A DNA stretch of 35,610 nucleotides, from NCBI GenBank assembly GCA_038496445.1, contig JALMLS010000338.1:1-35610 (forward strand), in the 5' to 3' direction. The notes beneath the pieces were generated by a model, which searched no databases, was not told the DNA's origin, and was given only the letters and a program-made list of their open reading frames with translations. The position numbers were made by a program, and so were the translations under genes. The stretch's first letter is position 1. Every line of letters begins with the position of its first letter. Shown here in pieces: positions 1 through 29,460 of this stretch. This stretch comes from Trichosphaerium sp. ATCC 40318. Taxonomy: Eukaryota > Protista > Tubulinea.

Positions 1-2220
1 AACGAAGGACCAACCACGCTTATTCTCAATTCTACCGGATTAACTTTTCATACAAATGGCGTTAACCAACTTAATACTAGTATAAATATCTACGGTAAGT
101 TTGACAATGCTGTTGAGAATGTTGCTAAATGTTTTGTTTAGGATTGTCTATCAATACAGAAGTATCATGCGCATCTATTAGTACACAGGTGAAAGGTTAT
201 CAAAACATAAGTATCTCGCTATCAGTATTCACAAACCGTGGTTGTAGATTCATCTTGATGGACTTTGCAAATGTTACTATTGAGTGCGTACCTTACACGT
301 GTTTGTACTTTCAATTTACGATTTCTTAGAAGCATAACAGTTACAGGCAATAGAGTGTCTCTGAACGTAATTGAAAGGTAACGTGTTGTATTTCTATATT
401 CCTTCTAAACATGAAAATAGTCGCAATGTTGCTGTACACAATTCAGTTTTTCAAGAGATGGAAGACTTTTCAAGATTTGGAGAGCCTTTGGGATTATGGA
501 TTGAAACAGCCGATACAGTATCTGTCAATGGCTGTGGCTTTGCAGTTAATAACAGAAGAGGATCTCGTCTGTCATCGTTGCAAGGGAAAGGTAATACTCG
601 GCAAACATTGTAATTTGTGATCACATAATTGTTGAACATAGGAATGGTTGCTACGTTCATCAGTGTTGACAAGGTGCGCATGTGAACTTAGGTTTCTATA
701 ATCTGATCTTATTTTAAGGTTATAATTGCTTCTTGCTTCTTTGCAACCAATTCAGTTGTTGCAACAGATTGTACTCCTCAATACTGAAACTTATTCCGAA
801 CTAATTTGTTTGCAGCAACAAATATACAACCCACATCAGTAGTATACATAAATTCAACTGATGTACAGCTATTCAGCACATCATTTATTGGGAATAGTGT
901 GCAAGAAAGCAACGCAACAGAGGACAGATGTTTCGGTACACGTGCACTAGCCAAGCGTCATATTAATCTCCTGTAGCTGGAGCTTTGGTTTTTGTCGGTG
1001 GATCTGCAGTGATAGATTCTTGTGTATTTGAGAATAATACATGCGTGTAACGTTCTCCTTAATTTTACTAGCAGACATCTGATTCCTGCTTAGCAAAATA
1101 CAAAATGATACAAGAACTATAAACTCTCCTGCATTGATTGGGTCTTCTATGAACATTACAATTCGGTAAACTACTTCTACGCATCAAGCATACTAAATTT
1201 CGTGTTTAGAAATACAACAACGTTTGAAAAAACCATCAACGATGGTATTGTAATTGTACACGGAATTGTATTGTACTAATTTATCAAATAGATACTGGAA
1301 GCGTTTTTGACTGTCCTTCAACACCAACCAATTTCACATGTGGCTACTCTGATATCACCACGTATTTTGTAGATTGCCAAACTAATGGTACACAGTATTT
1401 TGTATTTGCTCTTACAGTGTTGAATAGTTACTTGCGAAGGCAAAACTTTCATTCCTACAACAATGCCACCAACTGCTCCTACATTAACACCAACTGTTGA
1501 ACCGACAACCACACCAACATTCGAACCAACAACTGTATCACCTACAGCCGCACCAACAGTGGGTAGTCTACCACCTGAAATAGTGTTGTCTAGTCGTTTA
1601 ATAATAAATGGTGACTTTGTTAACTCAGAGATAGCAACAATTACTCCAGGAGGCTTTCTTCAAGTTGAAGGTATGTCTTGTATCACAAGTTATTTAGAAC
1701 ACGTTTATTGGATAATCCAATGTTTAGGATGTATTGTAATACCATCGAATACAACGTTCATCATTGACCTCACACGTGATAACACAACAGGTGTTGGTGA
1801 GACAAGAAGAGAAGTAATACGAAGCAATAGCAACTGTATCAATGGTACTTTTACATTAGTATCACCAGAATGTGTATTGGCGAGAATTGAGCAGACTCTC
1901 TCATCGTATGCTTCATTAACCTTTACATACCAAACTCCTTACTTTTGCATCTAGCATATTTGTAATTACATCAATGTCTGATAGTTGTGATGCTGCATCC
2001 GGAACAGCCTATATTGGTATTGTTTTAGGGGTTATATTTGGTATTCTTTTTCTGGTATGTCTCCTTATTGCTTTATCGCAGTATTTTTCGCACAACTTAA
2101 TTTCTATGGTAGATTGCTGCAGCTCTGATTATTGCTTTCTTTGTACCTAAGTCGAGGCATGCTATTTTCCCTTATACTTTACGAACCAAGGAACTAGAAG
2201 TCTCTTCTGCTCCAAGCTAA
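1..2220 (+). CDS. Surface glycoprotein family copy 1 (5' end outside window; exons 2-16, apparently intact)
   Basis: Manual splicing at GT-AG introns gives a continuous frame from NEGPTTLILNSTGL through LGLWIETADTVSV, a PT-rich stalk (1463-1560), GCIVIPSNTTFIIDL and the TM GIVLGVIFGILFLIAAALIIAFFV to PKSRHAIFPYTLRTKELEVSSAPS*, TAA at 2218-2220. Confidence 0.85.
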
Positions 2221-2744
2221 TACTGTAACAACATACTGTCATATCTGAGAATAAGTTTGTTACTCACAGTGCAATTTATTTGTTTAGCCTTGTCAAGAGA
2301 AGGCTGAGGTCAAGCCTCAAAATTTCAGCAACATAATTACGAAAGCGTAACCCACGTGATTAAAAAACCCAATGATCGTTTTGTTTATTTAAGTACAAGC
2401 ATGCTTGTGCATGACTACAGTTTTCTATATGTGGAATTTTTTCTTGTAACCATTAAAGGCTAGGACTGTCCAAATAGCTGTAACATAAAGAATAGGGTTT
2501 AAATATGCGTGGTAGAATATAATTGAGGGAGTTTAGGGAGTTTTACCTTTTTATTGCCGTTTTGTTTTAAACAGCGTTTTGTAGAAACCTACACACTCTC
2601 TACGCGTAAGCAGCGGCGTCTAGAGTATTGTTGCTTGATTTTAGATAGCAATCTACATTTTCAGCCTAAAACTGTTGTACAGTGTATGTAACTTCTGTTC
2701 CCATATAAACGGAGCTTGTTATACGATTGGCGAGACTGAGGCAT

Positions 2745-3150
2745 CATGAGCAAGTGCTCAAGGAGCACAAGCTGATAAAAACCAACAATACACAGTTAGC
2801 GTACATATTTATGATACCAAATATGATACAGGATATCGTATTTCTCAAACTCAGCAACAAGCTTTTGTATGTGTGATTCTTTACCCTGACGCCAAGATAG
2901 AACAAACGAATCTAGAAAAAAATGTTACAAAAAAAGAATATTGTGAGATTAAAATAACTAACATTGACGTAATAAGTTTGCTATGGTATGCAGTGACCAA
3001 TCGTGATATCAGCATCTGTACTCTTCAGCTTTTTTGCCATAATATCGACGACTAACAGTACATTAACAATAAAAGAAAATCTAGAAAACCCAAAATGGGT
3101 TTCTTCAAGTAGTTCAACATGGCAAGTTTCCATAATACTTTCCGGTAAAG
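2745..3150 (+). pseudogene. Possible degraded intron-containing gene fragment, product unknown
   Basis: Short coding-like segments (QQYTVSVHIYDTKYDTGYRISQ; KKEYCEIKITNID; TLTIKENLENPKWVSSSSSTWQVSII) are separated by GT..AG-like spacers. No intact frame or recognisable motif. Confidence 0.2.
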
Positions 3151-3254
3151 CCCACATTTTAATGTGAGTGATCTGTAATTTCAACCAGTGACGTTCTTTT
3201 GACGTGCGGATTGTTCACGTTCAAATACTTTACTTTTGGTACACAAAAGAGTGT

Positions 3255-8562: not shown

Positions 8563-10432
8563 TTATGTTTTATAGATTCTTGTACATGTTAGTTTGGGAA
8601 TAGAAGCAATTTTTACTTCCTTCGTTGTATTTTCATAGGGGTAAATGGCTTCTCTCAACTTAGGCACAAAGCAAGTGACAATCACAGCTGCAACAATCTA
8701 CAATAGAAATTAACATGAATAATACACAAGAAAGAAATATCATGCGTCATTCGTACCAATACAAGAATACCTAATGTGACACCTAAAACCATACCAATAT
8801 TTGTTGATTCTGTTCCATCATCACAACTATCAGATCGTAATAACAACTATGCTAGCGAAAAAGTAAACATTTGTGCAAAGATAAAAAGCATACGATGAAA
8901 GAGTCTGCTCAATTCTCGCCAATACACATTCTGGTGATACTACCATTGATACAGTTGCTGTTACTTTGTATTACTTCTCTTCTTGTCTCGCCAACACTTG
9001 TGTTATTATCACTTGTGAAGTCAATGATGAACGTTGTATTTGATGGTATCACAATACATCCTAAACATTGGGTTATCCAATAAACGTGTTCTAAATACCT
9101 TGTAATACAAGACATACCTTCAACTTGAAGAAAGCCTCCTGGAGTAATTGTTGCTATCTCTGAGTTAACAAAGTCACCATTTATTATCAAACGACTAGAC
9201 AACACTATTTCAGGTGGTAGACTACCCACTGTTGGTGCAGTTGGTGCAGTCGTAGGCGATATTGTCGGAGCAGTAGTCGGTGATGGTGTTGGAGGAATGA
9301 CTTCACATGTAACTATTTCACAGCTGTCAGCAAGCAAATACAAATAGTGTACCATTAGTTTGACAATCTACAAAATATGTGGTGATAGAAGAGTAGCCGC
9401 ATGTGAAATTTGTTGGTGTTGAAGGACAATCAAAAATGCTTCCAGCGTCTATTCCAGATATCAGTACAATTACTTACCATGACTACATCATACCATTGTT
9501 TTCAAATATTGTGTTTCTAAACACGAAATTTAGTATTCTTGATGCGTAGACAATAATAGTAGTGTACCTTATTGTAATGCTCACAGAAGACCCAATCAAT
9601 ACAGGGGATTGTATTATTGTTGTTAGTTTTCTAAACAAGAATTCAGTTATTGGCTATTACAATTAGGTGGAACGTTACACGCATGTAATATTCTCAAATA
9701 CACAAGAATCTATCACTGCAGATCCGCTGCTTGATACACCGTCCAACACCAATGCTCCAGCTATTACACAATTAATATGTCGCTCGGATAGACCACGTGT
9801 ACCAGTACATCTGTCCTCAAATGGATCAGCTTCTTCCACACTGTTCCCAATAAAAGTAGAGTTTAATACTTTAATATCAACTGAATTTATGTGTACAACT
9901 GAGGTGAAGTATTCGAGTTGTGCTGTTTACCAATAAGTATATATGTGAGACTGGTACATACAGATAGTTCTTGCAACTACATGATTGTCCTCAAACGAAC
10001 AAGAATCGATTACAACCTTAATGATCTTAGCATTTACAAACCAAGTCATAAACGTACTCTATCAACATTGATAAATGTAGCTACAAATCCTATGCTCAAA
10101 GAGTTATAACAGAAACAAGTGATGGCCAAATATTACCTCTACCTGCCATTCTGTTCAGGAGTATTACTCCGTTAAAATTATGATGAAAATGACAATTATT
10201 GACAGAAACTGTTTCGGCTGTTTCAATCCATAATCCCAAAGGCTCACCAAATCCTCTGTCATAGAACAGTTCATGGAAAAGTGAATTGCTTACAGCAACA
10301 TTTCGACTATTTTTCTTATTAAGGGAGCGCCCTTAAATAGAACTAAAACACTTGTACCTTGCAACTACTTGAATAGATCCGTTGTAGCCTGTAACTACCA
10401 TATTCCTAAGCGATCATGTGTAAGTGTCGTAC
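8563..10432 (-). pseudogene. Surface glycoprotein family copy 3, inverted, lacking exons 1-3, with an 11-bp frameshifting deletion at 8940/8941
   Basis: Homologous exons 4-16 on the minus strand (NMVVTG..., GLWIETAETVSV, PT stalk, TM, PKLREAIYPY...; stop at 8563-8565). AATGGTAGTATCACC replaces AATGGTACTTTTACATTAGTATCACC of copies 1, 2 and 5. Confidence 0.8.
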
Positions 10433-11350
10433 ATGATTCATAAACGCTATTTTATTATCCTGTGATTCCCAAAAGTCCAATGGTACAGCGTCTAACGTAA
10501 ATTGTTAGCTGTTATGCTTTTTTAACTAACACGTCGTTTTAAGCGTTGGTTAATCATTAAATAGTCTACGGAGCTGTACACAGGCGTATTTAATCAAACG
10601 TACTGAAAAGCCACTTGTTCCATTTAACATTTGGGTATACATGGGTTAATAGCGTGCGAAAACATCCTTCGTACGTGAATGTAAGTGCCATTTGTAATAT
10701 TTTACAATAAACGTCGTAAAACGATCTAATTTACCTATTTAAAGCACCCCCGCCTAGTTTTACGATATCTTGCCATGAAACGCTATACCAATCGTTGTGT
10801 TTTGTTATACTTAGCCGCTCCTCTACCTGTAGTACGTTAAAACACTATCACCATAAAAAAAAAGCTTGATTACATGTCTAACGAACGCTTTTCGTTCAAC
10901 CTAAACGACAATGCGCGCATTGTAGGTGTTTCATATTCTTGTTTTAGAGTTGTGTCAAGTATTCCAGAATAAGCTGTCTGTTAGAGTAAGAGTAAAAAAA
11001 CGTCATAAAGAATGGAATGGCATGCGAGAAAAAAAAAAAAGCCTGTCGACTTTTTTTTGGTCCATTTTATACCGTCTAAACATCTTAATGGTGGCTTTTG
11101 ACCGCTTGTATTAGTGCATAAACTATGTGTGAACCTCTTTAGAATATGTAGAACTTCAGACATGCAAGTGGTGCTGAACAAGCCAACATTTTTTTGTGAA
11201 ACAATTGTAGAGCTAATTAGCCGGTTTAATTCCGACTTGTTTTCAGGTCTACAGTCACTTATAGCTGAGCCGTTAATTGAACCACTAGTTCTCCGTTTTG
11301 TTAGCCAAACAGATTTGCTTTGAATTGATGTATTTCAACGCAATACAAGC

Positions 11351-13274
11351 ATGGCAGAACCTCGCACTTCGTCAGTTAATTTACAATATGTTAACCGCTT
11401 GGCCACTGGTTTACACCATTCAATGGTAATCGCAGACGATGGCTTTGTTTACACGTGGGGACTAAACGATGAGCGTCAATTGGGTAATACAGACGAATTC
11501 TCGAGTTCTATCGCAAGACCAATAAAATCAGTCATAAATATCGTCTGTATTGCTGCTGGCTGGCTTCATAGCCTTGCAGTTGATTCAAACGGTATTGTGT
11601 ATGCATGGGGCTGGAATTCAAACGGGTCATTGGGTCTGGGTGACTTTGCGTCACCTGTTTCGTCACCAACACGTGTTCCAAATCTCAACAATATCACGAA
11701 AGTCTCTGCCTATTATGTGAGTATGGCGTTATCACATTCAGGTCATGTCTACTCTTGGGGAAACAACTCATATCAAGGATTGGGTCATTCATTCGACAAG
11801 TGGACAGTTTCATCACCAGCGGTTATTCCAAATCTTCGAAATGTTCAAAAAATTCAAACTAATTCGTGTGTAAGTGGAGCAATTACATCAACAGGTCATG
11901 TCTTTCTTTGGGGAACAACAGAAGATGTGTTTCAAACAACAAGAGATGAAGCAGATGATAAATCATTATTCTTGAATCTAAAGACAATTTCATGTGTTCC
12001 AAGTATTGATGATGCCACTGATATTGCCATTGGTGATAGTCATGTACTTGTTCTCCTCAAGTCAGGACAAGTATTTTCTTTTGGATACAACTTGTATGGG
12101 CGTCTTGGGTTGGGTATTGATGATGAGTATGGCCAGGGTATCATCAAAGGACTCAATAACATCAAATCTGTACATGCTGGTGTGTATACATCATTTGCGA
12201 TTGATGATGAAGGTTGTTTGTTTGGTTGGGGTAAAGGGAAATGGATTGATTCGTTTGAATCAAACAAACCATTAAAATTACCTGGAAAATATCTTGAGTT
12301 TGCCAATAAACAATTTTATTACTTGGCAATATCTCATGACTTTCAGTTGGTCACAGGTGGAGGTAATTATTATGGTGAATCAACACAACAAAAGTTAACA
12401 TTCACCAATTATGAAAAGGTACTTTGAAATCTTATTTGTCTTTCTTTTTGTCTGACAATCTACAAGCACTTTAAACCAGCCAATAAAGTAATCACAAAAG
12501 ATAAAAACGATGATGCTGTGAAAGCAATGAATGCAGAGTTAAAAGAAGACAAAAAAGATAAGTACTTGTCAAAAGCTTTGGTTGATCCCAATCGTGATTA
12601 CACCAAGTTTGGAGATGCTCCTGAACACCTTGATATCATTCAAGATGCACTTGAAGCCTTTAAAATACACCAAAATCAAGACAACAACTTCCTCAACATA
12701 AGTCAAAGCCATACAGACTACAATAAGGTATGTTCTAATCAAGTAGTGTAGCTAATAGTGATAAAGAAGTATGACCAACCAAATGATGATAATCGTTCTG
12801 ACAACATACAAAATGATCCAAGAGCAGTAATACCTCAAAATTCATGGATAAATAAACCAAATGTTTCCGTAATTGACAACAAGGTACATCAATATAAAAA
12901 ATGTTTATTTTGTATTAATTAACTGGTTTTTAGAATACCATCAACTTATCTAGTACACCATTTGTTACAACTCATTCAGATGTTGCTAAAGTAAATGTAC
13001 AAGCTACCGTTTTTTTTTTGATTGTACTCACTTCTGTTAGAAGCCGAAACCGTCTGAAAGAACCGTACAATCAAGTGAAAAAATTGAGTGGGTGAGTACT
13101 TTGATATCAGCAGGGTTTGACAAATCAAGAGCACAAAAATTTGGATCCAAACTGAATCGTATGTGCGTTGACTTGAATGATGTCACAGGAAAGGTTATGA
13201 AAAGGCTTGGATTCACTGTACTTGAGCGTCTTGACTTTATTGAGTACCAAGACAAACAATTGAACGTTCAATAA
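11351..13274 (+). CDS. RCC1/BLIP-II repeat beta-propeller protein with low-complexity linker and SAM-like C-terminus (~578 aa, 5 exons)
   Basis: Repeated RCC1 motifs (G-x-V-Y-x-W-G-x-N-x-x-G-x-L-G; IAAGWLHSLA; IAIGDSHVL). Exons 11351-12418, 12467-12727, 12767-12883, 12934-12990 and 13041-13274 are joined by phase-0 GT-AG introns and keep an open frame to TAA 13274. The SAM-like call is an inference from EWVSTLISAGF...MKRLGFTVLER. Confidence 0.85.
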
Positions 13275-13627
13275 ACTTTCCTTTAGTTAGTATCAAATGT
13301 GTAGCGACATTATTGTGGCGTTTAATTAACATCAAAATTTGTAATACATGACATGGAAGAGTTTAAATACATTAAATCACGTAGATAAGGCATGATAACA
13401 AATGACATTAGAACGTGGGAAGGATGGTACAACAACAACAAAAGCGAAGGTGAGTTTTAGGAGAAAGAAAAGGAGAGACTCTATTTGTGAATAACTATAA
13501 GAACGAGTCTTGATGGTAAATACACGATACATAGAGATATTTGGACATACAGCGAGGAAGAAGTCCTTCAAGGTCAGTACAAGCAAGACATTTTAGTATT
13601 CAAGCAATAGTATTGCTGTAAAGTTGA

Positions 13628-17176: not shown

Positions 17177-17300
17177 TGTAAGAATGGTTTAGGTAGTTAA
17201 TCGAGGAGCGGCCGGTGGCTCTCCTACTTCTTTATTCCGTGCTTAAGGCACGATAGTCATGAGTGACTTAGTACAAGATTGGTGATATATGTATCTTACA
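17177..17300 (-). repeat. 3' LTR (124 bp)
   Basis: TGTAAGA...TCTTACA terminal inverted repeat; one mismatch to 23179-23302. Confidence 0.97.
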
Positions 17301-17303
17301 CAA

Positions 17304-17318
17304 CTCCCTCCTTTCTTT
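17304..17318 (-). other. Polypurine tract
   Basis: Minus strand AAAGAAAGGAGGGAG lies 3 nt before the 3' LTR. Confidence 0.9.
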
Positions 17319-17441
17319 AGACAACGTCTCGGTGTTGTTTCCTTCGTCTTTGTCGTCTTCTTGCTATTCTGACTAGCACTCAGAAACCTTCATAACCGTA
17401 GACCAACTCTTGGCTGGAGGTAGATTTAGTGCTGTCCCAAT

Positions 17442-20400
17442 CTAGTGATTGCCAGAGAGTGCCAGTGCTATATCCAGCGCGAATCTATCTTCAAATTGTT
17501 CTATCAGTTCATCTATCCAGTCTTCGTGTTTGTCATATTGTACATCTTCGTCGTCTGGTCGTAAGAATGAATCGATGAAAGGTTTTAATCTTTCAACGTT
17601 GAACACTCTACTCATTTGGCTCTCTTCGGGTAATTCGATTAAACATGTTGTGGGTCCCGATCTGCTGAGTATTTTGTATGGTCCTCTCCACTTGCATGTG
17701 AATTTACCCTCTTCTTCTTTCCTGTATGGTACATTGATCCATACTAGTTGTCCTGCTTTGTAATCTACGAATCTCCTTCTCTTATTGTAGTATCTAGCTT
17801 GGTCTTTCTTGGCTCTAAGTATTGCTTTCTTGGCTATCTGATATGCGTATCTTAGCCGGTGTGCCAGTACATCTGCCCAGTGTGACATCTTGTATTTATC
17901 TGGAATTTGTACTTTCTCTTCTGAGAGCATGTCTATCGGTATCCTGGGTTCTCTTCCAAACATCATCAGGAATGGCGAATACTTGGTGGAGTGATGGACT
18001 GCGGTTCGGTATGCGTATAATGCATATGGTATCCAATAGTCCCAGTCATTTTGCTGTGCATTTACTAATGATTTTAGGATTTCAACTATTGTGTGGTTGA
18101 ATCTCTCTGTTTGGCCGTCCGTTTGGGGATGGAATGCTGTTGTCTTCTTTGGATGAATATACAGCATGTTCATCACCTTTGTTAAGAAACGGCCAGTGAA
18201 GTCTCTGCCTTGATCCGTTAATACCTGTTTTGGCAGGCCGTATCGGAAGCAGAAATCTTTCACAAACACTGGAGCCACATCCGTAGCATGGTGGCTAGTC
18301 AGAGGGTACGCGTCTGACCATTTGGTGAAGTGATCTGTAATCACTAACAGGTACTTGTAGCCCCTAGCCGTTTGAGGTAGTGGACCGACGATGTCCATTG
18401 CCACTACCTGCATTGGCTCCAAAATAGGGAAGTTGACTGCGAACCCACCCTTTGGTAATCGAGGCGTCTTAGCCTTCTGACATCGCCTGCATGAGTCGCA
18501 CCATTCTCGCACATCTGAATACATGTTTGGCCAGTAGAATCTCCTGATTAGCCGCTGGTATGTTTTGATGAAACCAAAGTGTCCTGCGAATGGTGCGTTG
18601 TGGCATTGTCGTAATATGAAGTTTTGTAATGATTTCGGTACGTAAATCTGTAGTGTGTTCTCTCCTCGCGTGTTTTTGTTTCTTCTGTCCACATGATATA
18701 GGATATGTTTATCTTCTTCGTAGCCCAGTTGTTTTGCCTTCATGATAAATAATGTTTTCCTGAATCCGTGCTTCCATCTGACCCAGTCCGGTATAGTTCC
18801 TTCTGTCAGGTACTGTATGTATGCTCTGACTTCTGGGTCAGCTCTTTGGCAGTTGCTCCAGTCAATCGGTTCCATTTCCTCCAATCCCTGTCTGAAACTC
18901 GTTTTGTTTTTCTTAGGTCTTTCTTCTGTTTGCATGACCGTGTCCGCTTGTTGTTCCCATTCGTTTTCCTGGTGTGTTAGTCTTGGTGCATCTCTAGTGT
19001 TATTCGGGTCCAGTTGCATGTATGTGAGGTTGACGGTGGGTGCCAGTGGTGGTCTGGTGAGTGCATCGGCGTCTAAGTGTCTACTGCCTTTTTTGTATTT
19101 GAGCTTATAGTCATAGCTCTGTAGCTCCAATAGCCATCTCGCCACCATTGCTCGCGGGTTTTTTAGTCCTTGTATGTATTCTAGGGGTTTGTGGTCTGTG
19201 TATACTACTAGCGTGAATTGTGTCAGCGATATGTAGCCGGCGAATTCTTTCATTGCGGAGATTACCCCTAGAGTTTCTCGTTCAATTGTAGAGTACTTTT
19301 GTTGGGTTTTAGTGAATGCCTTGCTGTAGTATGCGATCACATGTTCCCGACCTTGTATCTTCTGTACCAGGGTAGCTCCCATTGCTACTTGTGATGCGTC
19401 CACGTGTATTTCAAATGGTACTGTGAAGTCGGGATGTAGTAGTATCGGCGGCGATATTAATAGGTTTTTTAATTTATCGAACGATCTTTGTTGTGCTTCA
19501 TTCCATTGCCATTCGTAGTTCTTTTGTTTTAGTTTGTTGAGAGGATTGGCCCAGTGTGCGTATTTTGGTACGAACCACTGGTAGTATCCTGTTATGCCCA
19601 AAAAGCGTTCCACTTCGGTTATGTTCTTTGGTGGTGGAGCGTTCTTTATCACATTTATGATCCTTGGGTTTGTGGCTATGCCGTTGGGAGTGACAACGTG
19701 ACCCAGGAATTCTACCTCATCCTTGAAGAGTACTGCTTTGGATGCCTTGAGTTTCACGTTATGCTCTCGTAGTCTGGAGAACATCAGTTTCAGATGTACT
19801 AGGTGTTCCTCGAATGTGCCGCTGAATACAATGATATCATCTACATAGCATAGGCAGATTTGCCAGAGTAGTCCTGACAGCATCAGGTTCATGTGTCTCT
19901 GGAATGTGGCTTGTGCATTCTTCAACCCGAATGGCATCCCTAGCCATTCATATAGGCCCCACGGTGTGGCGAACGCTGTCTTGGGTCTATCTCTGTTGGC
20001 CATCTTTATTTGCCAGTATCCAGATATTGCATCGAAGAGTGAAAACAGCTTAGCTCTGGATAGTGCTTCCAGTAGTTCTGTTATTCTTGGTAATGGGTGT
20101 ACGTCTTTCTTTGTGACCTTGTTCAGCTCTCTGTAGTCAATACAGAATCGCCATGTGCCATCCTTTTTCTTGACGAGCACTACCGGTGCGGACCATTGAG
20201 ACTTGGATTCTTGGATGACGCCCATCTTGAGCATCTTCTCTACCTCTTCTCGTACTATCTCTCGTTTTTGTGGCGGTAGAGGCCTGTATGGTATGTGTAC
20301 TGGCCTCGCGTTGTCTTCTACATCGATGTAATGTTCGGTTCCTTTGGCCTCTGCTGGTGTTTCTAGCTCTGATGTGAATACATCCAAATTAGAGGCCATG

Positions 20401-23147
20401 AATGTGTATGCAATCTCTTTTTGATCGTTTGTTATGTTATTACCCTCCATTTTGAAGATCTTTTTAGCTTTAAGTACGTCCTCTTCTGTGACTTTCATTC
20501 CTTCTTTCTTGATCTTGTCCATTTCGCCTCTATAGTCGATATCCAGTGCAGCGACAGTGTCTCCGTCTTCCAGTATTTTGAATTTTGCGATGTTGCATCC
20601 TCTTTTCAGTATTTTTGTTCTGTTCGTAGAATTCATCACGTGTACTGGCACCATGTATCGGTCGATTACATAGCAACACGACTTTGCCAGCTGTATGCCG
20701 AGTTTGTCGAATATGACATTGTTACCGTTGCTTTCGTCCGCATCGTGTGCTTCGACGATTCCAGCTTTCTTTGTCACTGGCGTGGATAATCGTGCCCAGA
20801 ATTGACATTGTGAATATCTGGGTATTTTTACTCTGCCACTGGTGATCACGTGTGCTTCTTCGGTGCGGCTTGCTGCTTCTCTGATCCGATTGAGCTGTAT
20901 CGTTTCCTGTTTTGCGTTGGTGATGGCTTCTTTGTCGAAGTTTATGTTAAGCTTGAATTCCTTTATCATATTTAATCCCAGTAGCACGTTATATCGGAAT
21001 TTCTTGACCACGTAGAACATGACATTCCTTTTGTCAGACCCCATGCCGATCGGTATTGTGGCTGTGCCAATAATGGGAAGTGGTTTGTTGTTTGCAGCAA
21101 ATACTTTAGGTTGAGCCATTCTGTGTACGATGTTACGCTTACTGATCCGTTTAATCATCTTATGGCTGATGATGCTGCACGTTGCGCCCGAATCTATCAC
21201 CGCTTGTACGTCTTTGATGTTATTTACCGTAATTCCAGCGGTCGTGATATTGTAGGAGTATTTTCTACGCGTAGGGCCGTCTGCTATAGTGTTTACGCTG
21301 TCATCGGTGTGTAACCGCGTGTACTCTATGCAATGGTTCTGCCTTTTGCCCTCTGATGGCGCTGGAGCCTGTCTTGATGGTTTAACGGCGTGTTTTATGT
21401 CGTCCAGTGTGAGCACTCGTTTTATGCATTCCGTTTTTCTATCTGTCGCCATGCGCTCTTTGGTGGCGTAACTATCGAAACTACAGTGCGCTCCTGTGGA
21501 TCTACTAACAACATTGTAATGCCAAATTCTTTTATTTATGTCAACACTATTAACGTTGTTGTCGAAGCGTCTAGGGCATTTCATTGCCGAGTGGTCTGCT
21601 TTACCACATATCTGACATGCCTCTCTTCTATCCCTGTTGCTATCTTCGCGCCTATCGTTAATCCTTCTTCTCTTTCTATCTTCGCTATCACGCCTATCCT
21701 CTTCGGCCGCTCTACGCCGTTTGTCGTACGCAGTCGGTCTTCTATCTCTGTTTGTGGGTCTCCTATCGTAGGTGTCTCTTCTGTCACGCCCTCTATAGCG
21801 ATCGTCGCGTATTGTATCTGCTCTTCGATAATCTCTGTCTCTCTGTTTCGGTGGTTCACGATCTAGCCTGTCACGCCTATCTCTTGCATCTCTGTCCCGC
21901 CGGTCAATCGGTTGTTTCGGTGGTGGCCGCGGTTTTCTGATCACATTGACGTCTTCTGTGATCGTTCCAGAGCTCTTGAGTTGTCGCTGCTTCATCTTCT
22001 CTTGCATTTTGCGTTTGTCGTTGAGCTTTCTCTCGGCAATGGTGGCTAATCTGATCAGTTCCTCATAGTCCATCTGGTTGGTATCGTAGTGGCCATAGTG
22101 TTCTTTGAGCTTCAGTTGTATCGTGGGTAGCGTGCCCAAGAAGAAGAGTCTCGTCTTTTCTGAGACCGATTGTCTTGCCATGTTTGCCCAGCGATCTATG
22201 TACGCTCTAAACTCCTCTACGGACTGACCGATTCGCTGTTGTGAGGACTGTAGCTTTTGGTAGGCTTCGTCGGTACCCCTTATGTATTGGAAGCGTTGGA
22301 TCAGTGCCAATATGATTTCGGCTGGTTCTCGTATGTCCATGTTGCTGAGCATGGTGAAGGCTTCGTTCTTTGCGAACTTGGATAGCAAGTATTTGTACCC
22401 CTTCTTGTCAATGTTGTACGTGTCTACTGTTTGTCGTATCCTCGTGAGGTAGACGTACATAGCTCTGACAGACTTGTTCACGCCAAACATGTCCAAGTTC
22501 TCCGGTATCTTTCCAGCCTTGTTGATCGATATCGATTTGCTCCAATCGTTGCCAATGATTACGCCATGGTTGTTCTTGATTGCGTGCGGTAAGAATTGTA
22601 GGACGTGTTTCAACTCTTCTTTAGTGCATTCCAATCCATGTAGCGTCTCTATGTATGCTGTAGCGTTGTAATCGGATACACTGGAGTGGCTTTTGGGTGC
22701 GCTATTCGGCGTTTTGCGTACTTCTTGCCGCATTCGTTTGTAGCTAGATGCTTCGCCATCTGAGTCTTCGCCAAGGTCAATCGGGCTCAGTCGTTCCTTG
22801 TTTTGTATAGTTGGCATCATGGGTTGTGGCGGTGCTGTTTTGCGCTTCTTCTTGCCCTTATCTTTGCCCACGCCATTGTTGCTGCGTTTACGTACCTTTC
22901 GAGGGGTGCTAGTATCTACTGGCGTCGTTTTGCCCAATTTCTTTTTCGGCTTCGTGTTTGCAACTAGAGGTTTAGGTCGCTTCTCAACCCTTTCTTTCTC
23001 ATCTTCCGAGCTATCTGGTATGTGCACTTCCTCTGCGCTATCGGCTTTCTCCCCATCCTCAGATGTAGGTGGAGTCTCTTTCTGGTCTTGTTGCACTATT
23101 TCGTCGGCTAATTCGGGAATGGTCTGATCTACGTCGCCGTCGCTCAT
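17442..23147 (-). CDS. gag-pol: Gag-Pol polyprotein (~1901 aa from first ATG)
   Basis: CCHC knuckle CQICGKADHSAMKC; protease VIDSGAT; RT MPFGLKNA/YVDD; RNase H DAS..E..TDHKPL..DALTR; integrase HHCC (HNAPFAGH..CRRC), D-D-E (MDIVGP, TDQG, QTERFN) and GPY. The ORF-track start at 23177 is a TTG overlapping the PBS. Confidence 0.97.
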   Translation of the reverse strand: MSDGDVDQTIPELADEIVQQDQKETPPTSEDGEKADSAEEVHIPDSSEDEKERVEKRPKPLVANTKPKKKLGKTTPVDTSTPRKVRKRSNNGVGKDKGKKKRKTAPPQPMMPTIQNKERLSPIDLGEDSDGEASSYKRMRQEVRKTPNSAPKSHSSVSDYNATAYIETLHGLECTKEELKHVLQFLPHAIKNNHGVIIGNDWSKSISINKAGKIPENLDMFGVNKSVRAMYVYLTRIRQTVDTYNIDKKGYKYLLSKFAKNEAFTMLSNMDIREPAEIILALIQRFQYIRGTDEAYQKLQSSQQRIGQSVEEFRAYIDRWANMARQSVSEKTRLFFLGTLPTIQLKLKEHYGHYDTNQMDYEELIRLATIAERKLNDKRKMQEKMKQRQLKSSGTITEDVNVIRKPRPPPKQPIDRRDRDARDRRDRLDREPPKQRDRDYRRADTIRDDRYRGRDRRDTYDRRPTNRDRRPTAYDKRRRAAEEDRRDSEDRKRRRINDRREDSNRDRREACQICGKADHSAMKCPRRFDNNVNSVDINKRIWHYNVVSRSTGAHCSFDSYATKERMATDRKTECIKRVLTLDDIKHAVKPSRQAPAPSEGKRQNHCIEYTRLHTDDSVNTIADGPTRRKYSYNITTAGITVNNIKDVQAVIDSGATCSIISHKMIKRISKRNIVHRMAQPKVFAANNKPLPIIGTATIPIGMGSDKRNVMFYVVKKFRYNVLLGLNMIKEFKLNINFDKEAITNAKQETIQLNRIREAASRTEEAHVITSGRVKIPRYSQCQFWARLSTPVTKKAGIVEAHDADESNGNNVIFDKLGIQLAKSCCYVIDRYMVPVHVMNSTNRTKILKRGCNIAKFKILEDGDTVAALDIDYRGEMDKIKKEGMKVTEEDVLKAKKIFKMEGNNITNDQKEIAYTFMASNLDVFTSELETPAEAKGTEHYIDVEDNARPVHIPYRPLPPQKREIVREEVEKMLKMGVIQESKSQWSAPVVLVKKKDGTWRFCIDYRELNKVTKKDVHPLPRITELLEALSRAKLFSLFDAISGYWQIKMANRDRPKTAFATPWGLYEWLGMPFGLKNAQATFQRHMNLMLSGLLWQICLCYVDDIIVFSGTFEEHLVHLKLMFSRLREHNVKLKASKAVLFKDEVEFLGHVVTPNGIATNPRIINVIKNAPPPKNITEVERFLGITGYYQWFVPKYAHWANPLNKLKQKNYEWQWNEAQQRSFDKLKNLLISPPILLHPDFTVPFEIHVDASQVAMGATLVQKIQGREHVIAYYSKAFTKTQQKYSTIERETLGVISAMKEFAGYISLTQFTLVVYTDHKPLEYIQGLKNPRAMVARWLLELQSYDYKLKYKKGSRHLDADALTRPPLAPTVNLTYMQLDPNNTRDAPRLTHQENEWEQQADTVMQTEERPKKNKTSFRQGLEEMEPIDWSNCQRADPEVRAYIQYLTEGTIPDWVRWKHGFRKTLFIMKAKQLGYEEDKHILYHVDRRNKNTRGENTLQIYVPKSLQNFILRQCHNAPFAGHFGFIKTYQRLIRRFYWPNMYSDVREWCDSCRRCQKAKTPRLPKGGFAVNFPILEPMQVVAMDIVGPLPQTARGYKYLLVITDHFTKWSDAYPLTSHHATDVAPVFVKDFCFRYGLPKQVLTDQGRDFTGRFLTKVMNMLYIHPKKTTAFHPQTDGQTERFNHTIVEILKSLVNAQQNDWDYWIPYALYAYRTAVHHSTKYSPFLMMFGREPRIPIDMLSEEKVQIPDKYKMSHWADVLAHRLRYAYQIAKKAILRAKKDQARYYNKRRRFVDYKAGQLVWINVPYRKEEEGKFTCKWRGPYKILSRSGPTTCLIELPEESQMSRVFNVERLKPFIDSFLRPDDEDVQYDKHEDWIDELIEQFEDRFALDIALALSGNH

Positions 23148-23158
23148 TGCAAGTAAAA

Positions 23159-23176
23159 ATCGTACTCGTGTCGCCA
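23159..23176 (-). other. tRNA primer-binding site
   Basis: Minus strand TGGCGACACGAGTACGAT begins 2 nt after the 5' LTR. It is complementary to a tRNA ending ...GTCG-CCA (G discriminator, Arg or Ser type; identity not determined). Confidence 0.8.
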
Positions 23177-23178
23177 AA

Positions 23179-23302
23179 TGTAAGAGTGGTTTAGGTAGTT
23201 AATCGAGGAGCGGCCGGTGGCTCTCCTACTTCTTTATTCCGTGCTTAAGGCACGATAGTCATGAGTGACTTAGTACAAGATTGGTGATATATGTATCTTA
23301 CA
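23179..23302 (-). repeat. 5' LTR (124 bp)
   Basis: Near-identical to 17177-17300; contains AATAAA on the element strand. Confidence 0.97.
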
Positions 23303-23306
23303 TAGA

Positions 23307-23815: not shown

Positions 23816-24050
23816 TGTTCTTGTTTCACTTTGTTTACATAGCGTGATATAATTTGTGAACTCAAGATATCGTGATCAAGGTTCTTTGGGCAGTTAAAAG
23901 CAATGAGAGGCCCAACCAAAACTAATGAGAACATATCACTTTTTATTTTGATAATAGTTTTGGAAAGCATCACGTGCGTTTTTAAAAAACAGCTCAACTT
24001 ATAAAAAAACGCTTTATTACGCCAAATAATGCTTATTCCTTGTATAGTAA

Positions 24051-26428
24051 ATGACTTTGCGTTATTTCTGTACTTTCTTTTTCTTTTTTGCTCTTGCCGC
24101 ACCTACCCACAGTAGCACAAGTACGAATACCTATTCAGCGCAATATGACGTTTCATTAATTTTTACCAAATACCTTAGTCGTAACTTCAAGTGACCACGA
24201 TTGTGGCACTGACATGGATTGCTACTTGAACGAAGGACCAACCACGCTTATTCTCAATTCTACCGGATTAACTTTTTCTGCCGGCCTGTTTCAAGCACAA
24301 CTCAACGAAAGTATAGACATTTATGGTATGGACGCTTTTGGAAGGTTCTGTAACAAATTATTTAGCGTTAAATAAAGGCATAAATGTTTCATGCGCACTT
24401 CAAAGGCAAACGGTGATAGGGAATCAAAACATAAGTATCTCATTATCAGGGTTTACGTTTGATGGTTGTAAAATCAGATTGAGCGAGTTCACAAATGTCA
24501 CTGTAGAGTACGTTCATTACAAGTCTAGTTTATTGATCAATTGACATGTAGGGATATGGTAGTTACAGGCACAGAGAGTTCTATTCAAATATTTGACAGG
24601 TACACGTGATTTATTCGATTTTGTCACAATTAATGAGAAAAATAGTCGAAATGCTGCTGTTCGCAATTCACTTTTCCAAGAACTGTACGATGACAGAGGA
24701 AGATTTGCCGAAGCTTTGGGACTATGGATAGAAACAGTCGAAACAGTTTCTGTGAATAATTGTCATTTTCAACATAATTATAAAGGAGGAAGTCTTCTGC
24801 ACAGAATGACAGGAAGAGGTAATATTTGATTCCCGTTATTTTGTTTGATCGTAACTATTTAAGCATAGGAATTGTTGCTACATTCAGAACTGTTGATAGA
24901 GTACTTTGTGACTTTGTATAACAGGCTAAATATTCATACGCATTTATTTAGGTTACAATCAATTCTTGTTTGTTCAAGGACAATTATGTACTTGCAAGAG
25001 GTGGTATGTGAATCTTAGTCCTCATATATTCTCATTTATATATAGCACAATTTGAATACTATGTTTCAGTACTATACGCAAATTCAACTGATGTACAGAT
25101 AATAAACTCAACTTTCATTGATAATACTGTGGAAGAAGAAAAACCAATCAATGACAGATGTACTGGTACGCACGCCTAGCCAAGTATCATGTTAATTGCC
25201 TATTAGTTGGCTCATTGGTTTTGAGTGGTCTATCAAACGGTGGATCAGCAGTGATAGATTCTTGTGTATTTGAGAATATTACATGCGTGTAACGTCCTAC
25301 TTATTTAATAGCCAATAACTGATGACTGATCCAACGTAGAAAACAAGTACAAAATAATCCAATAACTACAAGATCCCCAGCATTGATAGGCTCTGATATG
25401 AACTTTATGATAAGGTACTCTATTGTTACACGTCAAGCATACTTAATTTCGTATTTAGAAATACAACAACATTCGAAAACAGCCTCAACAATAGTAATGC
25501 ACAAGCAATTGTATTGTACTAATTTATCAAATAGATACTGGAAGCGTTTTTGATTGTCCTTCAACACCAACAAATCTTACATGTGGCTACTCTGATATCA
25601 CCACGTATTTTGTAGATTGTCAAGCTAATGGTATAAATTATTTATATTTGCTCGCTTACAATGTTGAATAGTTACTTGCGAAGGCAAAACTTTCATTACC
25701 ACTCCTATAATATCGCCTACAACAGCACCAACAGTTGAACCGACAACTGTATCACCTACAGCTGCACCAACAGTTGGTAGTCTACCACCTGAAATAGTGC
25801 TGTCTAGTCCTTTGATAATAAATGGTGACTTTGTAAACTCAGAGATAGCAACAATTACTCCAGGAGGCTTTCTTCAAGTTGAAGGTATGTCTTGTATCAC
25901 AAGTTATTTAGCACACGTTTATTGGTTAATCTGATGTTTAGGATGTATTGTGATACCATCAAATACAACGTTCATCATTGACTTCACAAGTGATAATGAC
26001 ACAACAAGTGTTGGTGAGACAAGAAGAGAAGTAATACGAAGCAACAGTAACTGTATCAATGGTACTTTTACATTAGTATCACCAGAATGTGTATTGGCAA
26101 GAATTGAGCGGACTCTTTCATCGTATGCTTTTTAGTTTTGCACTGATCTCTAACTTTTGTTAGCATAATTGTTATCACATCTAGAGCTGATAGTTGTGAT
26201 AGCGGAGCATCAGTAAATGTTGGTTTGGTATTAGGTGTCATAGCCGGGATTTTTGTGTTCGTATGTGAATGATCATTTCTTTTTCTTGTTGTCATTTATT
26301 TTTCTCAAACTAAATTTGTATGGTAGATTGCTGTAGGCCTGATTATTGCTTTCTTTGTACCTAAGTTGAGACGAGCCATTTTCCCTTATACTTTAACAAC
26401 CAAGGAAGTAGAAATATCTTCTGTTTGA
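24051..26428 (+). CDS. Surface glycoprotein family copy 5, intact, 16 exons, ~550 aa type I membrane protein
   Basis: Signal peptide MTLRYFCTFFFFFALAAPTH; 15 GT-AG introns give an uninterrupted frame. Beta-helix-like repeats (VSVNNCHFQHN, VTINSCLFKDN, VQIINSTFIDN, AVIDSCVFENI), many N-x-S/T sequons, a PT stalk, TM VGLVLGVIAGIFVFIAVGLIIAFFV and tail PKLRRAIFPYTLTTKEVEISSV* (TGA 26426-26428). Confidence 0.88.
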
Positions 26429-27444: not shown

Positions 27445-28919
27445 CCCATCGAGTCGTCATCAAAAAAGTCAACTTTTGTAAACCCAAAAATTGTGGATTT
27501 CACAATAAAGAATACGTAACTCCCCAATGTTGCAACAACGCCGTGGCTTTTCCAAGTACTATGACAAACGCCCAAAGGAGCGCGTGTTGAAACGGTCAAA
27601 CAGAGAATCCATACAGTATGTACTTCATAACATCTGCGATACTGGCAACTAATATTTCTTTGGGCTCCGATTTTGACAGCAGCATTGAAGCCTTAAGGAT
27701 TTACCTATGTTGACTATCCCGTGTTAGACGTTTAGACTAAACTTAAAAAGCAACGTAACATTTTTGGTATTGGAAAAGCCAAGACACCAATGGCATTTTT
27801 CACCTTCAAGTGGGAAAATAAGATTTTTGAAAACTTGTTATTCACAAGCACATATGAACACCATCACACTGACCTAAAAAATGGGATCACTACCCATATG
27901 ACGAACTTCTCTGGCATAGTGATATGGCATGGGATTATTGGAATACAGAATATTCGCACATTGTGGAGCACAGGTGAAGCACAAATTTTATTTACTGGGA
28001 AAACAGGTTTGTATCAACTTAATCACTACTTCAACATCTCTGCCAATATGAAATTTGATGCTAACATGGTACATTCATTTCTAGTGATTGTCTTTAAGCG
28101 CCACATGGTACCAGGTTATTTCACTTGTGCTGATGAAATCTGTATTCCATCATAATATTTCAAGTGCCATATAAAAACTCACAACACTAAGAAACCATAC
28201 GCATGGGCCATAGAATTGAAGTGTCTTGATGATTCGAACTAGGTATCTGATTGACTTTATCAATGCTTTGATATAGCCTCATCTCACACCAAATGAATCC
28301 TTCCTTCATGTGCAAAATGGTCGAAAACAATTGGAAGGTGCCATTTTTTTTACATGTGACTCTAATTTTTGTTCAGCCATGGATCTCAACAAGCTGGGGG
28401 AATTTAACTTAGACGCTACTTCATCATGTAATGCCAACCACTATCGGTGGCCTTGAAGCAATCACTTGCAAAAAAAGTGCCTGTGGGATACACAAGATTG
28501 GCACCATTGGACAAAACTGTTGCCGTTGCAACAAATAACAATGAAATCGTAAAGTTGGCCACCACTCTCTACTGTGTGCATGATGACAAAAGTTCATTTG
28601 ACAGTAGCAATAAAAGGTATGTTCAAAAATAAAAATGATGACACCAAGGGAAATAGTGATCAATTTGGCCAGCTGGTCAAGTCCTATTGTACAGATAGGC
28701 GGTTCAAAAAAAGGAACATGACACTTCTTGTTGGTTGGTTTTACTACACCCTCACAACTGCTTTTATTCTGTATAAGTGTCAAGACGGAATCCTTACTCC
28801 CAAAGGTTTTTTACAAGAAATTGCAACGGAATTGCTTCTCACAGGGACAGGAAAATAACCTCCTAATAAATTTGTGACAGTTTTTTTTTTCTTGTGATTT
28901 TTCATGACGACTCCTTTGG
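27445..28919 (+). mobile_element. piggyBac-like DNA transposon (decayed), ~1.5 kb, imperfect TIRs
   Basis: Left end CCCATCGAGTCGTCATCAAAAA versus reverse complement of right end CCAAAGGAGTCGTCATGAAAAA (18/22 match); CCGG on both sides; contains a transposase pseudogene. Confidence 0.8.
27790..28858 (+). pseudogene. piggyBac-type DDD transposase pseudogene
   Basis: FSGIVIWHG..RTLWS; PGYFTCADEICIP; KKPYAWAIELKCLDDS; CDSNFCS; HDDK; KGNSDQFGQLVKSY; AFILYK..FLQEIATELL. These are piggyBac (DDE_Tnp_1_7) motifs interrupted by stops and frameshifts. Confidence 0.85.
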
Positions 28920-29232
28920 CCGGAGGTGAGGTCTCAAAAGTACCTCAAGGAGTCATCTCTGCCATAAACATAATTCTAGCTTGAAGTCTCATGTCCTCAG
29001 CCTGCCACGCTCTTGTTTCCACTTTTTTGTACACAAAGCGTGATAGTATCGTGATCGAGGTTCTTTGGGCAGGTAAAAACAATGAGAGGTCCAACCAAAC
29101 TAATGAGAACGTATCACACCTTTTTTATTTTGGTAATAGTATTGGAAAGCATCACGTGCGTTTTAAAAAAAAAGATTACCTTTTTAAAAACAGCTTTATT
29201 ACGCCAAATAATGCTTATTCCTGCTATAGTAA

Positions 29233-29460
29233 ATGACTTCGCGTCATTTCTGTACTTTCTTTTTCTTTTTTGCTCTTGCTGCACTTACCAATGGTAACAC
29301 AAGTACGAATACCTATTCAGCGTGATATGACGTTTTATTAATTTGCCAAACATCTTAGTCGTAACTTCAAGTGACCACGTTTGTGGCACTGATATGGCGT
29401 GCTACGTGAGGCAAAGACCATCGGCGCTTATTCTCAATTCTACTGGGTTAAATTTCCCAT
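29233..29460 (+). pseudogene. Surface glycoprotein family copy 6: exon 1 and part of exon 2 (with its upstream region), cut at the inversion junction
   Basis: MTSRHFCTFFFFFALAALTNG.. then VTSSDHVCGTDMACYVRQRPSALILNSTGLNFP, followed by a switch to inverted transposase sequence. Confidence 0.8.

Follow-up and report, generated by a model that had tools for sequence, protein, structure and literature searches.

The VSG genes of trypanosomes and the vls genes of Borrelia change by segmental gene conversion among related copies, and their membrane-proximal part is the more conserved one. Both systems use a single expression site, their donors are promoterless and often defective, and switching takes place in somatic time.

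In Dictyostelium, the tgr family is made up of intermingled paralogues that undergo recombination or interlocus conversion, a behavior termed birth-and-death evolution (PMC13648343). The large surface family DGF-1 of Trypanosoma cruzi carries right-handed parallel beta-helix modules in its extracellular part and has been shaped by duplication, recombination and gene conversion, with many pseudogenes; each of its seven modules is about 390 aa long, and the protein also has a 'hat' domain and 7-9 TM helices (bioRxiv 10.64898/2026.07.27.741050). The subunits of the Entamoeba Gal/GalNAc lectin, an amoeba surface adhesin, are encoded by small multigene families for which gene conversion is reported (PMC3125142).

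The gene family of Trichosphaerium described here resembles the Dictyostelium tgr genes in forming clusters that encode putative type I surface glycoproteins in an amoeba, with pseudogenes interspersed. In contrast, the Tgr ectodomains are built of IPT/TIG Ig-like repeats, whereas the Trichosphaerium ectodomain is predicted to be beta-helix-like and no sequence relation between the two was found; moreover, the Trichosphaerium cluster shows no head-to-head ligand-receptor pair. Unlike DGF-1, to which no homology was detected, the amoeba protein is about 555 aa long and combines one coil region with a Pro/Thr stalk and only one TM helix, and its fold is here a lead. The Entamoeba lectin subunits are unrelated proteins from a host-associated parasite. 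The likeness to VSG and vls lies in segmental conversion and in the more conserved membrane-proximal part, but the amoeba copies are mostly intact and promoter-bearing, and exchange among them is known from evolutionary history alone.

The gene cluster and its versions

The window, i.e., the whole stretch of DNA analyzed, is the entire 35.6-kb contig JALMLS010000338.1. An earlier note on this DNA listed six copies of a 16-exon membrane gene, which are borne out by blastn with copy c5 as query, by the c5 splice model and by a paralogue transcript; it missed a seventh copy, the mirror of c5. The features are as follows:

1..2220, plus strand: c1, which diverges most among the copies; the contig start cuts off its 5' end, so that it begins within exon 2, and it runs to the stop codon
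3341..6024, plus strand: c2, with a promoter motif at 3369 and a usable ATG at 3556
8599..10416, minus strand: c3, a pseudogene with exons 1-3 missing and frameshifts in exons 14-16
10417..13642, plus strand: segment of an RCC1-repeat gene family (ORF 11351-12427; Pfam WD40_RLD/RCC1)
13643..14843, plus strand: c4, reduced to the end of exon 9 plus exons 10-16
17176..23302, minus strand: Ty3/gypsy LTR retrotransposon with an intact 1911-aa polyprotein ORF (17442-23177)
23901..26428, plus strand: c5, the sole intact copy of the window (mirror aside), with a promoter motif at 23969 and a CDS at 24051-26428 (554 aa)
27445..28919, plus strand: non-autonomous dispersed DNA element of 1475 bp, flanked by a CCGG target duplication, its terminal inverted repeats imperfect
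28920..29455, plus strand: c6, comprising the promoter (its motif at 29151), exon 1 and a portion of exon 2
29447..35610, minus strand: right inverted-repeat arm mirroring 22244-28408, containing c5' (CDS 31426-33803) and stopping at the contig end inside a gypsy copy

The mixture of intact, frameshifted and truncated copies described in the earlier note is real for c5 (intact), c2 (+1 frameshift) and c3 (decayed), but not for c1 and c6, as the former is cut at its 5' end by the contig end and the latter by the fold-back junction. In c1, which is 74% identical to c5 in blastn, no disabling lesion was seen within the part present (the frame of exons 9-12 was read by hand), and its full-length version on contig C273 gives an intact model of 557 aa. 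The frameshift of c2 lies in exon 14, at about 5537-5553, and is absent from its versions on C210 and C273, which give intact 554-aa models; the promoter/exon-1 region of c2 also carries a tandem duplication of 104 nt (3402-3604). On C210, the version of c3 is full-length yet also broken, and that of c4 is full-length and intact (558 aa). The fragment c6 is the counterpart of the 5' end of locus p716 on C210 (95% identity to C210:74577-74210).

The window contig is an alternative version of a larger cluster (C210/C273/C81), and the locus occurs in three versions within the assembly, differing from each other by 1-3%. Genome-wide collection of paralogues, as the earlier note had proposed, retrieved 13 distinct near-full-length loci, besides more distant members. 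Seven copies are located at C210:68965-95007 and others on C81, C61, C70 and C4. With splice borders searched within ±18 nt of the projected c5 exon borders, the 16-exon model is intact in 11 of the 13, the broken loci being c3 and pC70.

Protein architecture and predicted fold

The model of c5 was built by hand and checked against the paralogue alignment and the transcript. Its exons, all on the plus strand, are:

E1-E6: 24051-24120, 24179-24325, 24366-24507, 24552-24599, 24646-24818, 24869-24900
E7-E11: 24952-25003, 25046-25165, 25207-25288, 25340-25414, 25459-25493
E12-E16: 25535-25630, 25672-25884, 25942-26122, 26164-26260, 26327-26428

Every splice site is GT/AG and the 554-aa frame is open. 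The MMETSP transcript protein P0002 matches a paralogue of the same organism (G000:C81:28196-30611) exactly in 16 blocks, and the identical exon pattern of this transcript confirms the 16-exon layout. Every copy starts from an ATG of its own and encodes a signal peptide, and an upstream ATCACGTGCGTT/CACGTG motif is found at about -61 to -86 in every full-length locus but c1, as well as upstream of the sole member with a transcript.

The encoded protein begins with a signal peptide and an ectodomain, followed by a Cys-rich segment and a mucin-like Pro/Thr stalk. Next to the membrane lies a conserved, beta-rich domain (about 100 aa), after which come a single TM helix and a tail, about 25 aa long, in which PKLR....PY.L is conserved. 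The ectodomain comprises about 300 aa of coils, predicted to be right-handed and beta-helix-like, with many N-glycosylation sites and a recurring motif, V-x-V/I-x-N/D-C/S-x-F-x-x-N, of which six to seven occurrences are visible in the c5 translation. The proteins probably form a family of type I membrane glycoproteins that is restricted to one lineage and presumably located at the cell surface.

Database searches returned few relatives. The Pfam scan of protein P0001 gave only NosD, below significance (E=0.82; 9.5 bits, with the cut-off at 23.6), and that of the window ORFs gave nothing significant for the membrane-gene family. The PDB sequence search found nothing relevant, and neither P0001 nor the exon 13-14 ORF retrieved any relatives beyond P0001 itself in a word-index protein search. 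Among 1.84 billion representative proteins, the sole relative was the transcript of the same-organism paralogue, and the protein databases hold no transcript-derived protein of the core group. Being essentially orphan, the family appears to be an undescribed surface-protein family of a little-studied amoeba.

As for the fold, when residues 20-345 were compared with the ESM-Atlas, each of the 30 best-scoring named clusters was a beta-helix family (scores 0.91-0.94), and single-sequence AlphaFold2 of P0001 gave a mean pLDDT of 36.7. The language-model features of this region and the coil motif recall the bacterial and archaeal Chlam_PMP, Beta_helix, NosD and DUF1565 families; nevertheless, there is no HMM-level match, and the amoeba protein relies for its anchoring on a eukaryotic signal peptide and one TM helix, not on an autotransporter or S-layer context. 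The beta-helix fold of the ectodomain is therefore best treated as a lead, not as proven. The proteins may act in adhesion or recognition, through binding to prey, substrate or other cells.

Mosaic ancestry and its interpretation

The near-identity of exons 13-14 and their intervening intron in c1-c5, pointed out in the earlier note, is confirmed, with 83-95% identity in exon 13, 91-98% in exon 14 and 87-100% in intron 13. Since conservation of intron 13 does not extend to the distant paralogue (58% only), the near-identity of this intron in c1-c5 indicates recent shared ancestry. The contrast between a variable N-terminus and a conserved anchor is seen mainly in c1, whose exons 2-8 are 57-75% identical to those of the other copies, and in c3; the core paralogues show 86-93% identity in exons 2-8 and 90-97% in exons 11-14. 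Protein-level selection alone was rejected as the source of the exon 13-14 identity because the intron and synonymous divergence of c1 drop together there; constraint at the nucleotide level only was also rejected, as the dispersed C4 copy drops much less.

The copies are mosaics, as shown by PHI, region trees and AU tests. PHI gave p<=0.001 whether all 13 loci, the 9 core loci or exons 2-9 alone were analyzed. The region trees conflict, and clades well supported in one region, which were picked for the AU tests after the trees had been seen, are rejected in others. The pair p716 and p689 is supported by 90/89 in E11-E14 and rejected by E4-E8 (p=0.002) and by the 3' data (p=0.001), the pair g81 and p81b by 100/98 in E11-E14 and rejected in E4-E8 (p=0.0008), and the grouping of c4 with c5 is rejected with p=0.003 and p=6e-5. 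Neutral divergence follows the same blocks: in c1, p689 and c3, intron and synonymous divergence collapse around exons 9-14. Between c1 and c2, intron mismatches amount to 100/234 (43%) in I2-8, drop to 11/112 (10%) in I11-13 and rise again to 28/78 in I14-15 (Fisher 1e-10 and 2e-5), and the dS of c1 falls from 0.67 to 0.15-0.24 in the low-divergence block; between p689 and p716, only 4/71 positions mismatch in I9-10. In addition, ten consecutive c5-private variants in E13-E14 all match c1 (permutation p=0.0008), and 77-79% of the differences between locus versions fall at paralogue-polymorphic sites, compared with 35% under a null that takes no account of rate variation among sites (p 1e-10 to 1e-13).

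Part of this picture could originate in the assembly of near-identical paralogues or haplotypes, through chimeric reads and mixed consensus. The two arms of the window's inverted repeat (22244-28408 and 29447-35610; 6.2 kb) are 99.6-100% identical, and the repeat carrying the c5 mirror is probably a chimera. Inverted repeats of 5.0-6.2 kb whose outer end is the contig end occur on the window contig (C322) and on C439, while the larger C210, C273 and C81 are not palindromic. The assembly also contains three versions of one locus, and the frameshift of c2 and the lesions of c5 on C273 are each confined to one version. C322, C273 and C439 are small contigs, in which consensus errors or chimeric joins may mimic exchange; this concern is countered by the presence of the c1 block in all three versions and by the conflicting trees of loci from larger contigs. 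Indeed, the loci behind the trees and PHI come mostly from the large contigs C210, C81, C61, C70 and C4, the blocks of c1 and p689 span hundreds of bases and recur in independent versions, and the transposon insertions show clean target duplications and empty sites. It is therefore very unlikely that assembly artefacts are the main source of the mosaicism and of the truncated or mirrored copies.

Regarding selection, dN/dS calculated per exon region, as the earlier note had also suggested, is 0.44-1.05 (mean about 0.7) in E2-E9, i.e., not well below 1 in the ectodomain, and 0.13-0.31 (about 0.2) in E13-E14. Judged by the refuting conditions set in the earlier note, these values, together with PHI and the conflicting trees, reject a plain birth-and-death family with a single tree. 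Windows of 15 codons in the ectodomain reach 2-4 and some pairs reach 1, which could reflect a polymorphic self/kin or mating recognition system comparable to tgrB1/tgrC1, in which paralogue conversion supplies alleles kept by balancing or diversifying selection. The 1-3% divergence between locus versions, mostly drawn from paralogue variation, is consistent with this idea, as are the clusters, pseudogenes and interlocus conversion likewise found in the tgr family (PMC13648343). However, a mean of about 0.7 fits relaxed constraint equally, window-based dN/dS is inflated by recombination, and no paired ligand-receptor gene arrangement was seen. Homology to Tgr is also missing, as neither a shared Pfam domain nor database relatives were found and IPT/TIG (Ig-like E-set) repeats are absent even at Pfam E<=10. 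Such a recognition system thus seems quite unlikely.

The segmental exchange, which is real, and the broken copies also recall a programmed system of the VSG/vls type, in which one expressed copy would be rewritten somatically by segmental conversion from silent, partly broken donors. The more variable part lies between a conserved 5' promoter block and a conserved E11-E14 block, which might serve as homology anchors; moreover, the databases hold a transcriptome of the same organism, yet only one divergent member has a transcript-derived protein. Nevertheless, 11 of the 13 loci are intact, each starts from an ATG of its own and encodes a signal peptide, the promoter motif is shared by all full-length loci but c1, the broken copies are a minority and partly specific to one version, and neither promoterless cassettes nor telomere-type tandem repeats were seen in the window. 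The exchange tracts are old, as the c1 block is common to all three locus versions, and a free-living amoeba would lack obvious adaptive-immune pressure. Neither silent promoterless donors with a single expression site nor somatic switching is indicated anywhere, and the mosaic-making conversion is seen only as evolutionary history. Therefore, the analogy with VSG and vls drawn in the earlier note is not supported, and a programmed system is highly improbable. The reading given in that note is supported in part, as regards mosaic exchange and ectodomain dN/dS.

The cluster is probably better explained as a birth-and-death family with interlocus gene conversion, encoding beta-helix-like surface proteins expressed gene by gene, with change that is evolutionary rather than programmed. 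Its tandem clusters with decayed copies, the segment-wise conflict of trees and the lower neutral divergence in exchanged tracts all agree with this. Tandem duplication, decay of some copies and transposon insertion would drive change over evolutionary time, while segmental gene conversion or unequal exchange among neighboring paralogues would turn every gene into a patchwork and feed differences among locus versions. The membrane-proximal domain is probably kept by purifying selection, together with conversion in the diverged copies, and the coil region is probably under weak or mixed constraint, with amino-acid changes clustering in short patches after each conserved coil motif. Every gene would act as its own expression unit. 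In the clearest conversion blocks, exchange made the membrane-proximal parts more alike and did not diversify the distal part; as it stands, this evolutionary behavior is ordinary for clustered surface gene families.

We consider it unlikely that the family is a true variable recognition repertoire, with conversion as the main source of alleles kept by selection, i.e., a beta-helix counterpart of tgr- or MHC-type systems in a second amoeba lineage. If it were, the fold-back copies on C322 and C439 might be real somatic rearrangements. Should the proteins prove to be binding receptors, the beta-helix scaffold would join the short list of folds used for expanded recognition repertoires among protists. 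The three cluster versions in a single assembly offer a rare direct view of paralogue exchange feeding variation at a locus.

Mobile elements and the inserted segment

The Rfam scan of the window gave no match. The 5' halves of c3 and c4 were lost to the single RCC1-family segment (3.2 kb; 92-93% identical to arrays on C104, C446 and C168), and these head-to-head halves are retained on C210 (85008..82065). The gypsy element has LTRs of about 125 nt (99% identity) and a TAGA target duplication; it is missing from the C273 version and, within the part that aligns, from C210. Similarly, the 1475-bp element, present in at least 18 full-length copies with 91-98% identity, is absent from the C210 and C273 versions, and its empty site is visible on C210.

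Gene copies, exon layout and predicted fold

The window is contig C322 in its full length (35,610 bp), one of the 642 contigs that make up a 70-Mb assembly, and its G+C content is about 36% apart from one richer 6-kb stretch. The borders of the gene copies, obtained by blastn with the most complete copy as query together with two alignments, bear out the earlier note's count of six distinct copies of a 16-exon type I membrane protein gene, in both orientations.

Copies of the gene in the contig (borders from blastn)
1-2220, +: c1, begins within exon 2 at the contig end
3341-6024, +: c2
8599-10416, -: c3, without exons 1-3 and with several frameshifts
13643-14843, +: c4, exons 10-16 only
23901-26428, +: c5, intact
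28920-29455, +: c6, promoter, exon 1 and part of exon 2 only
31354-33953, -: c5', mirror of c5

No lesion was seen in the portion of c1 present in the window. In c2, the promoter and exon 1 are duplicated over 104 nt, with a usable ATG at 3556, and the frame is shifted by one additional base in exon 14, at 5537-5553. The c5 model, built by three-frame reading with borders then set against the paralogue alignment, has 16 exons, GT/AG at all borders, introns of 40-66 nt and a 554-aa open frame.

The exon 13-14 ORF, used as a query against 1.84 billion representative proteins, retrieved a single match (P0001, E 5.6e-24), which is 85-100% identical, exon by exon, to a distant paralogue on another contig of the same assembly (G000:C81:28196-30505; hereafter T81). 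Its cluster mate P0002, an MMETSP transcript ORF, is residue-exact at this locus (28196 through 30611) in 16 blocks, whose sizes match the exon pattern of c5. Therefore, the transcript belongs to the same organism and the 16-exon layout is confirmed, including the 57-nt in-frame intron separating exons 13 and 14. This intron reads through as an ORF in c1, c3 and c4, and contains a stop in c5. Database searches were performed with single exons or with the natural proteins P0001/P0002, the joined coding sequence being used for translation and codon counts only.

The c5 translation starts with a hydrophobic signal peptide, followed by a region of ~300 aa (the coil region) with six to seven V-x-V/I-x-N/D-C/S-x-F-x-x-N repeats, 15 N-x-S/T sites and 18 Cys. 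Next come a Cys-rich segment, a Pro/Thr stalk, a conserved domain of ~100 aa encoded by exons 13-14 (the anchor), and a 27-aa hydrophobic helix, split across exons 15 and 16, that precedes a ~23-aa tail with the pattern PKLR....PY.L common to c5 and the distant paralogue. Pfam returned no significant match (best NosD, E=0.82), the best 30 named ESM-Atlas clusters for residues 20-345 were all right-handed beta-helix families (scores 0.91-0.94; 0.77-0.81 for the whole protein), and single-sequence AlphaFold2 gave a low pLDDT of 36.7. Given these three outcomes, a right-handed beta-helix ectodomain is a supported lead, not a result.

Mosaic ancestry of the copies

The divergence of c1 from the other copies differs strongly between blocks of the gene, in agreement with the earlier description of near-identical exons 13-14, intron included, in c1-c5 and of divergent N-terminal exons in c1.

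Identity of c1 with the other copies, by block (E, exon; I, intron; numbering of the c5 model)
Exons 2-8: 57-75%
E11-E14 with introns I11-I13: ~90-96%
I14-E16: 68-84%

Intron mismatches between c1 and c2 amount to 100/234 in I2-8, 11/112 in I11-13 and 28/78 in I14-15 (Fisher 1.4e-10 and 1.8e-5), and those between the paralogue p689 and its neighbour p716 to 114/230 in I2-8 and 4/71 in I9-10. The dS of c1 falls from 0.67 in E2-E8 to 0.15-0.24 in E13-E14, and that of p689 from 0.7 to 0.07 in E11-E12; for the dispersed C4 copy, the drop in divergence is weak. In addition, intron 13 of T81 is 58% identical to that of c5, no closer than the other T81 introns. Because intron and dS divergence fall in the E13-E14 block and intron 13 is unconserved in T81, the near-identity of these exons and their intron across c1-c5 is due to recent shared ancestry, and constraint alone does not account for it.

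The trees of the different regions conflict, and AU tests in one region reject clades well supported elsewhere, the tested clades having been picked after the trees had been seen.

Clades in conflict between regions (AU tests; g81 and p81b are paralogues)
(p716,p689): support 90/89 in E11-E14; rejected by E4-E8 (p=0.002) and the 3' end (p=0.001)
(g81,p81b): support 100/98 in E11-E14; rejected by E4-E8 (p=0.0008)
(c4,c5): supported in the 5' region (up-E3); rejected by E4-E8 (p=0.003) and the 3' end (p=6e-5)

In the PHI test (own implementation, 1000 permutations), 0/1000 permutations were as low as observed for all 13 loci of the family, for the nine core loci and for exons 2-9 alone, and p=0.008 was obtained on E11-E16. 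A single consistent tree is thus refuted by PHI, the conflicting region trees, the AU tests and the block-wise drop in intron and dS divergence, and the copies are mosaics, as had been proposed.

Two further contigs are colinear with C322, namely C210 over 95007->75215 at 95-96% identity and C273 over 12870->329 at 96-97%, and therefore three versions of the locus are present in the assembly. Exchange between paralogues is taken as a source of the differences between these versions. At the sites differing among them, both states were found in other paralogues at 55/71 sites in c5 (p 5e-13) and 37/47 in c2 (p 7e-10), under a null of 35% that takes no account of sites evolving at different rates. 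Across E13-E14, the C322 version of c5 has a run of ten successive variants of its own, all of which carry the c1 state (permutation p=0.0008, before correction for 12 donors).

Selection, family extent and known systems

For six intact paralogues of the core group, dN/dS is 0.44-1.05 in E2-E9, and the ectodomain is thus not strongly constrained; in E13-E14 the ratio is 0.13-0.31, at a similar dS. The conserved anchor of the core group is therefore explained by purifying selection on the protein. The amino-acid variation of the coil region is patchy and placed after each conserved motif, and a few 15-codon windows have dN/dS >1; because recombination is present, no positive selection is claimed.

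From 28 extracted copies and identity matrices, the family comprises 13 distinct near-full-length loci, seven of them within C210:68965-95007 and the rest on C81, C61, C70 and C4. Additional members are T81, for which there is a transcript, and some weaker matches spread over ~10 more contigs. With every splice border free to shift by up to 18 nt, an intact 16-exon model was found in 11/13 loci, c3 and pC70 (the C70 paralogue) being broken. CACGTG precedes the ATG by 61-86 nt in every full-length locus but c1. The E-box-like promoter motif in the window is ATCACGTGCGTT, at 3369, 23969, 29151 and 33885(-), and T81 has the same upstream element; ATCACGTGCGTT is a candidate common regulatory site. 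T81 is the sole member with a transcript protein in databases. No core-type protein came up when the representative proteins were searched exhaustively with the exon 13-14 ORF, nor among candidates of 303-964 aa or of 69-219 aa, which is weak evidence of low expression in that culture or of assembly loss.

The earlier interpretation of a diversifying surface array holds in a weak form: the genes for these surface proteins are clustered, exchange between paralogues has made each of them a patchwork, and the ectodomain is not strongly constrained. The strong form, in which pseudogenes would serve as donors in the manner of VSG/vls, is not supported, because most loci are intact and promoter-bearing and the membrane-proximal part is made more uniform by the clearest tracts. 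Among described systems, the Dictyostelium tgr family (PMC13648343) comes closest, together with T. cruzi DGF-1 (10.64898/2026.07.27.741050) as regards the scaffold.

Locus versions, palindromes and mobile elements

The counterparts of c3 and c4 on C210 are full-length and head to head. C210:85008..82065 is swapped in C322 for 3.2 kb (10417-13642), which occupy exactly the place that the c3 and c4 5' halves have on C210 and share 92-93% identity with arrays of RCC1-repeat genes on C104, C446 and C168. Either this segment is a patch inserted ectopically from a different gene family, or the join is chimeric. c6 corresponds to the 5' end of p716, the next gene on C210 (95% identity). At C341/C61, C428/C528/C61 and C439/C273/C81, too, a locus is present in two or three versions that are 96-100% identical. 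The best match of C322 at c1 is C210 and that of C210 at c5 is C273; such shifting best matches point to haplotypes that have recombined, to a genome present in more than two copies or to a culture that is mixed.

At 29447-29458 the sequence folds back and repeats 28408->22244 in inverted orientation, up to the contig end within the gypsy element, and a similar structure is found on C439.

Inverted repeats
C322, 22244-28408 / 29447-35610: 6.2-kb arms around a family member
C439, 1-5044 / 5241-10270: 5.0-kb arms, 98.6% identical, around another family member

In both, the spacer is 0.2-1 kb and one arm stops at the contig end, and the larger contigs matching them (C81 for C439) are non-palindromic. 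They are probably fold-back chimeras of the library or assembly, although they may be real recent fold-back rearrangements. As the palindrome is taken as a probable chimera, c5' was not counted as an independent gene.

The "transposon debris" previously noticed among the copies is a fair description.

Mobile elements and dispersed repeats
17176-23302, -: Ty3/gypsy element; gag-pol ORF of 1911 aa intact, LTRs of ~125 nt 99% identical, TAGA target duplication
27445-28919: non-autonomous DNA element of 1475 bp; terminal inverted repeats (CC.A..GAGTCGTCAT) imperfect, CCGG target duplication
~7682-8155 and ~15476-16208: dispersed repeats between gene copies

The two short dispersed repeats are of ~490 bp (>40 copies, 77-80% identity) and ~730 bp (at least 25 copies, 84-92%), respectively. 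Full-length copies of the 1475-bp element number at least 18, with 91-98% identity. The Ty3/gypsy element is young. Both this element and the 1475-bp element are missing from the other locus versions, with empty sites on C273 (gypsy) and C210 (1475-bp).
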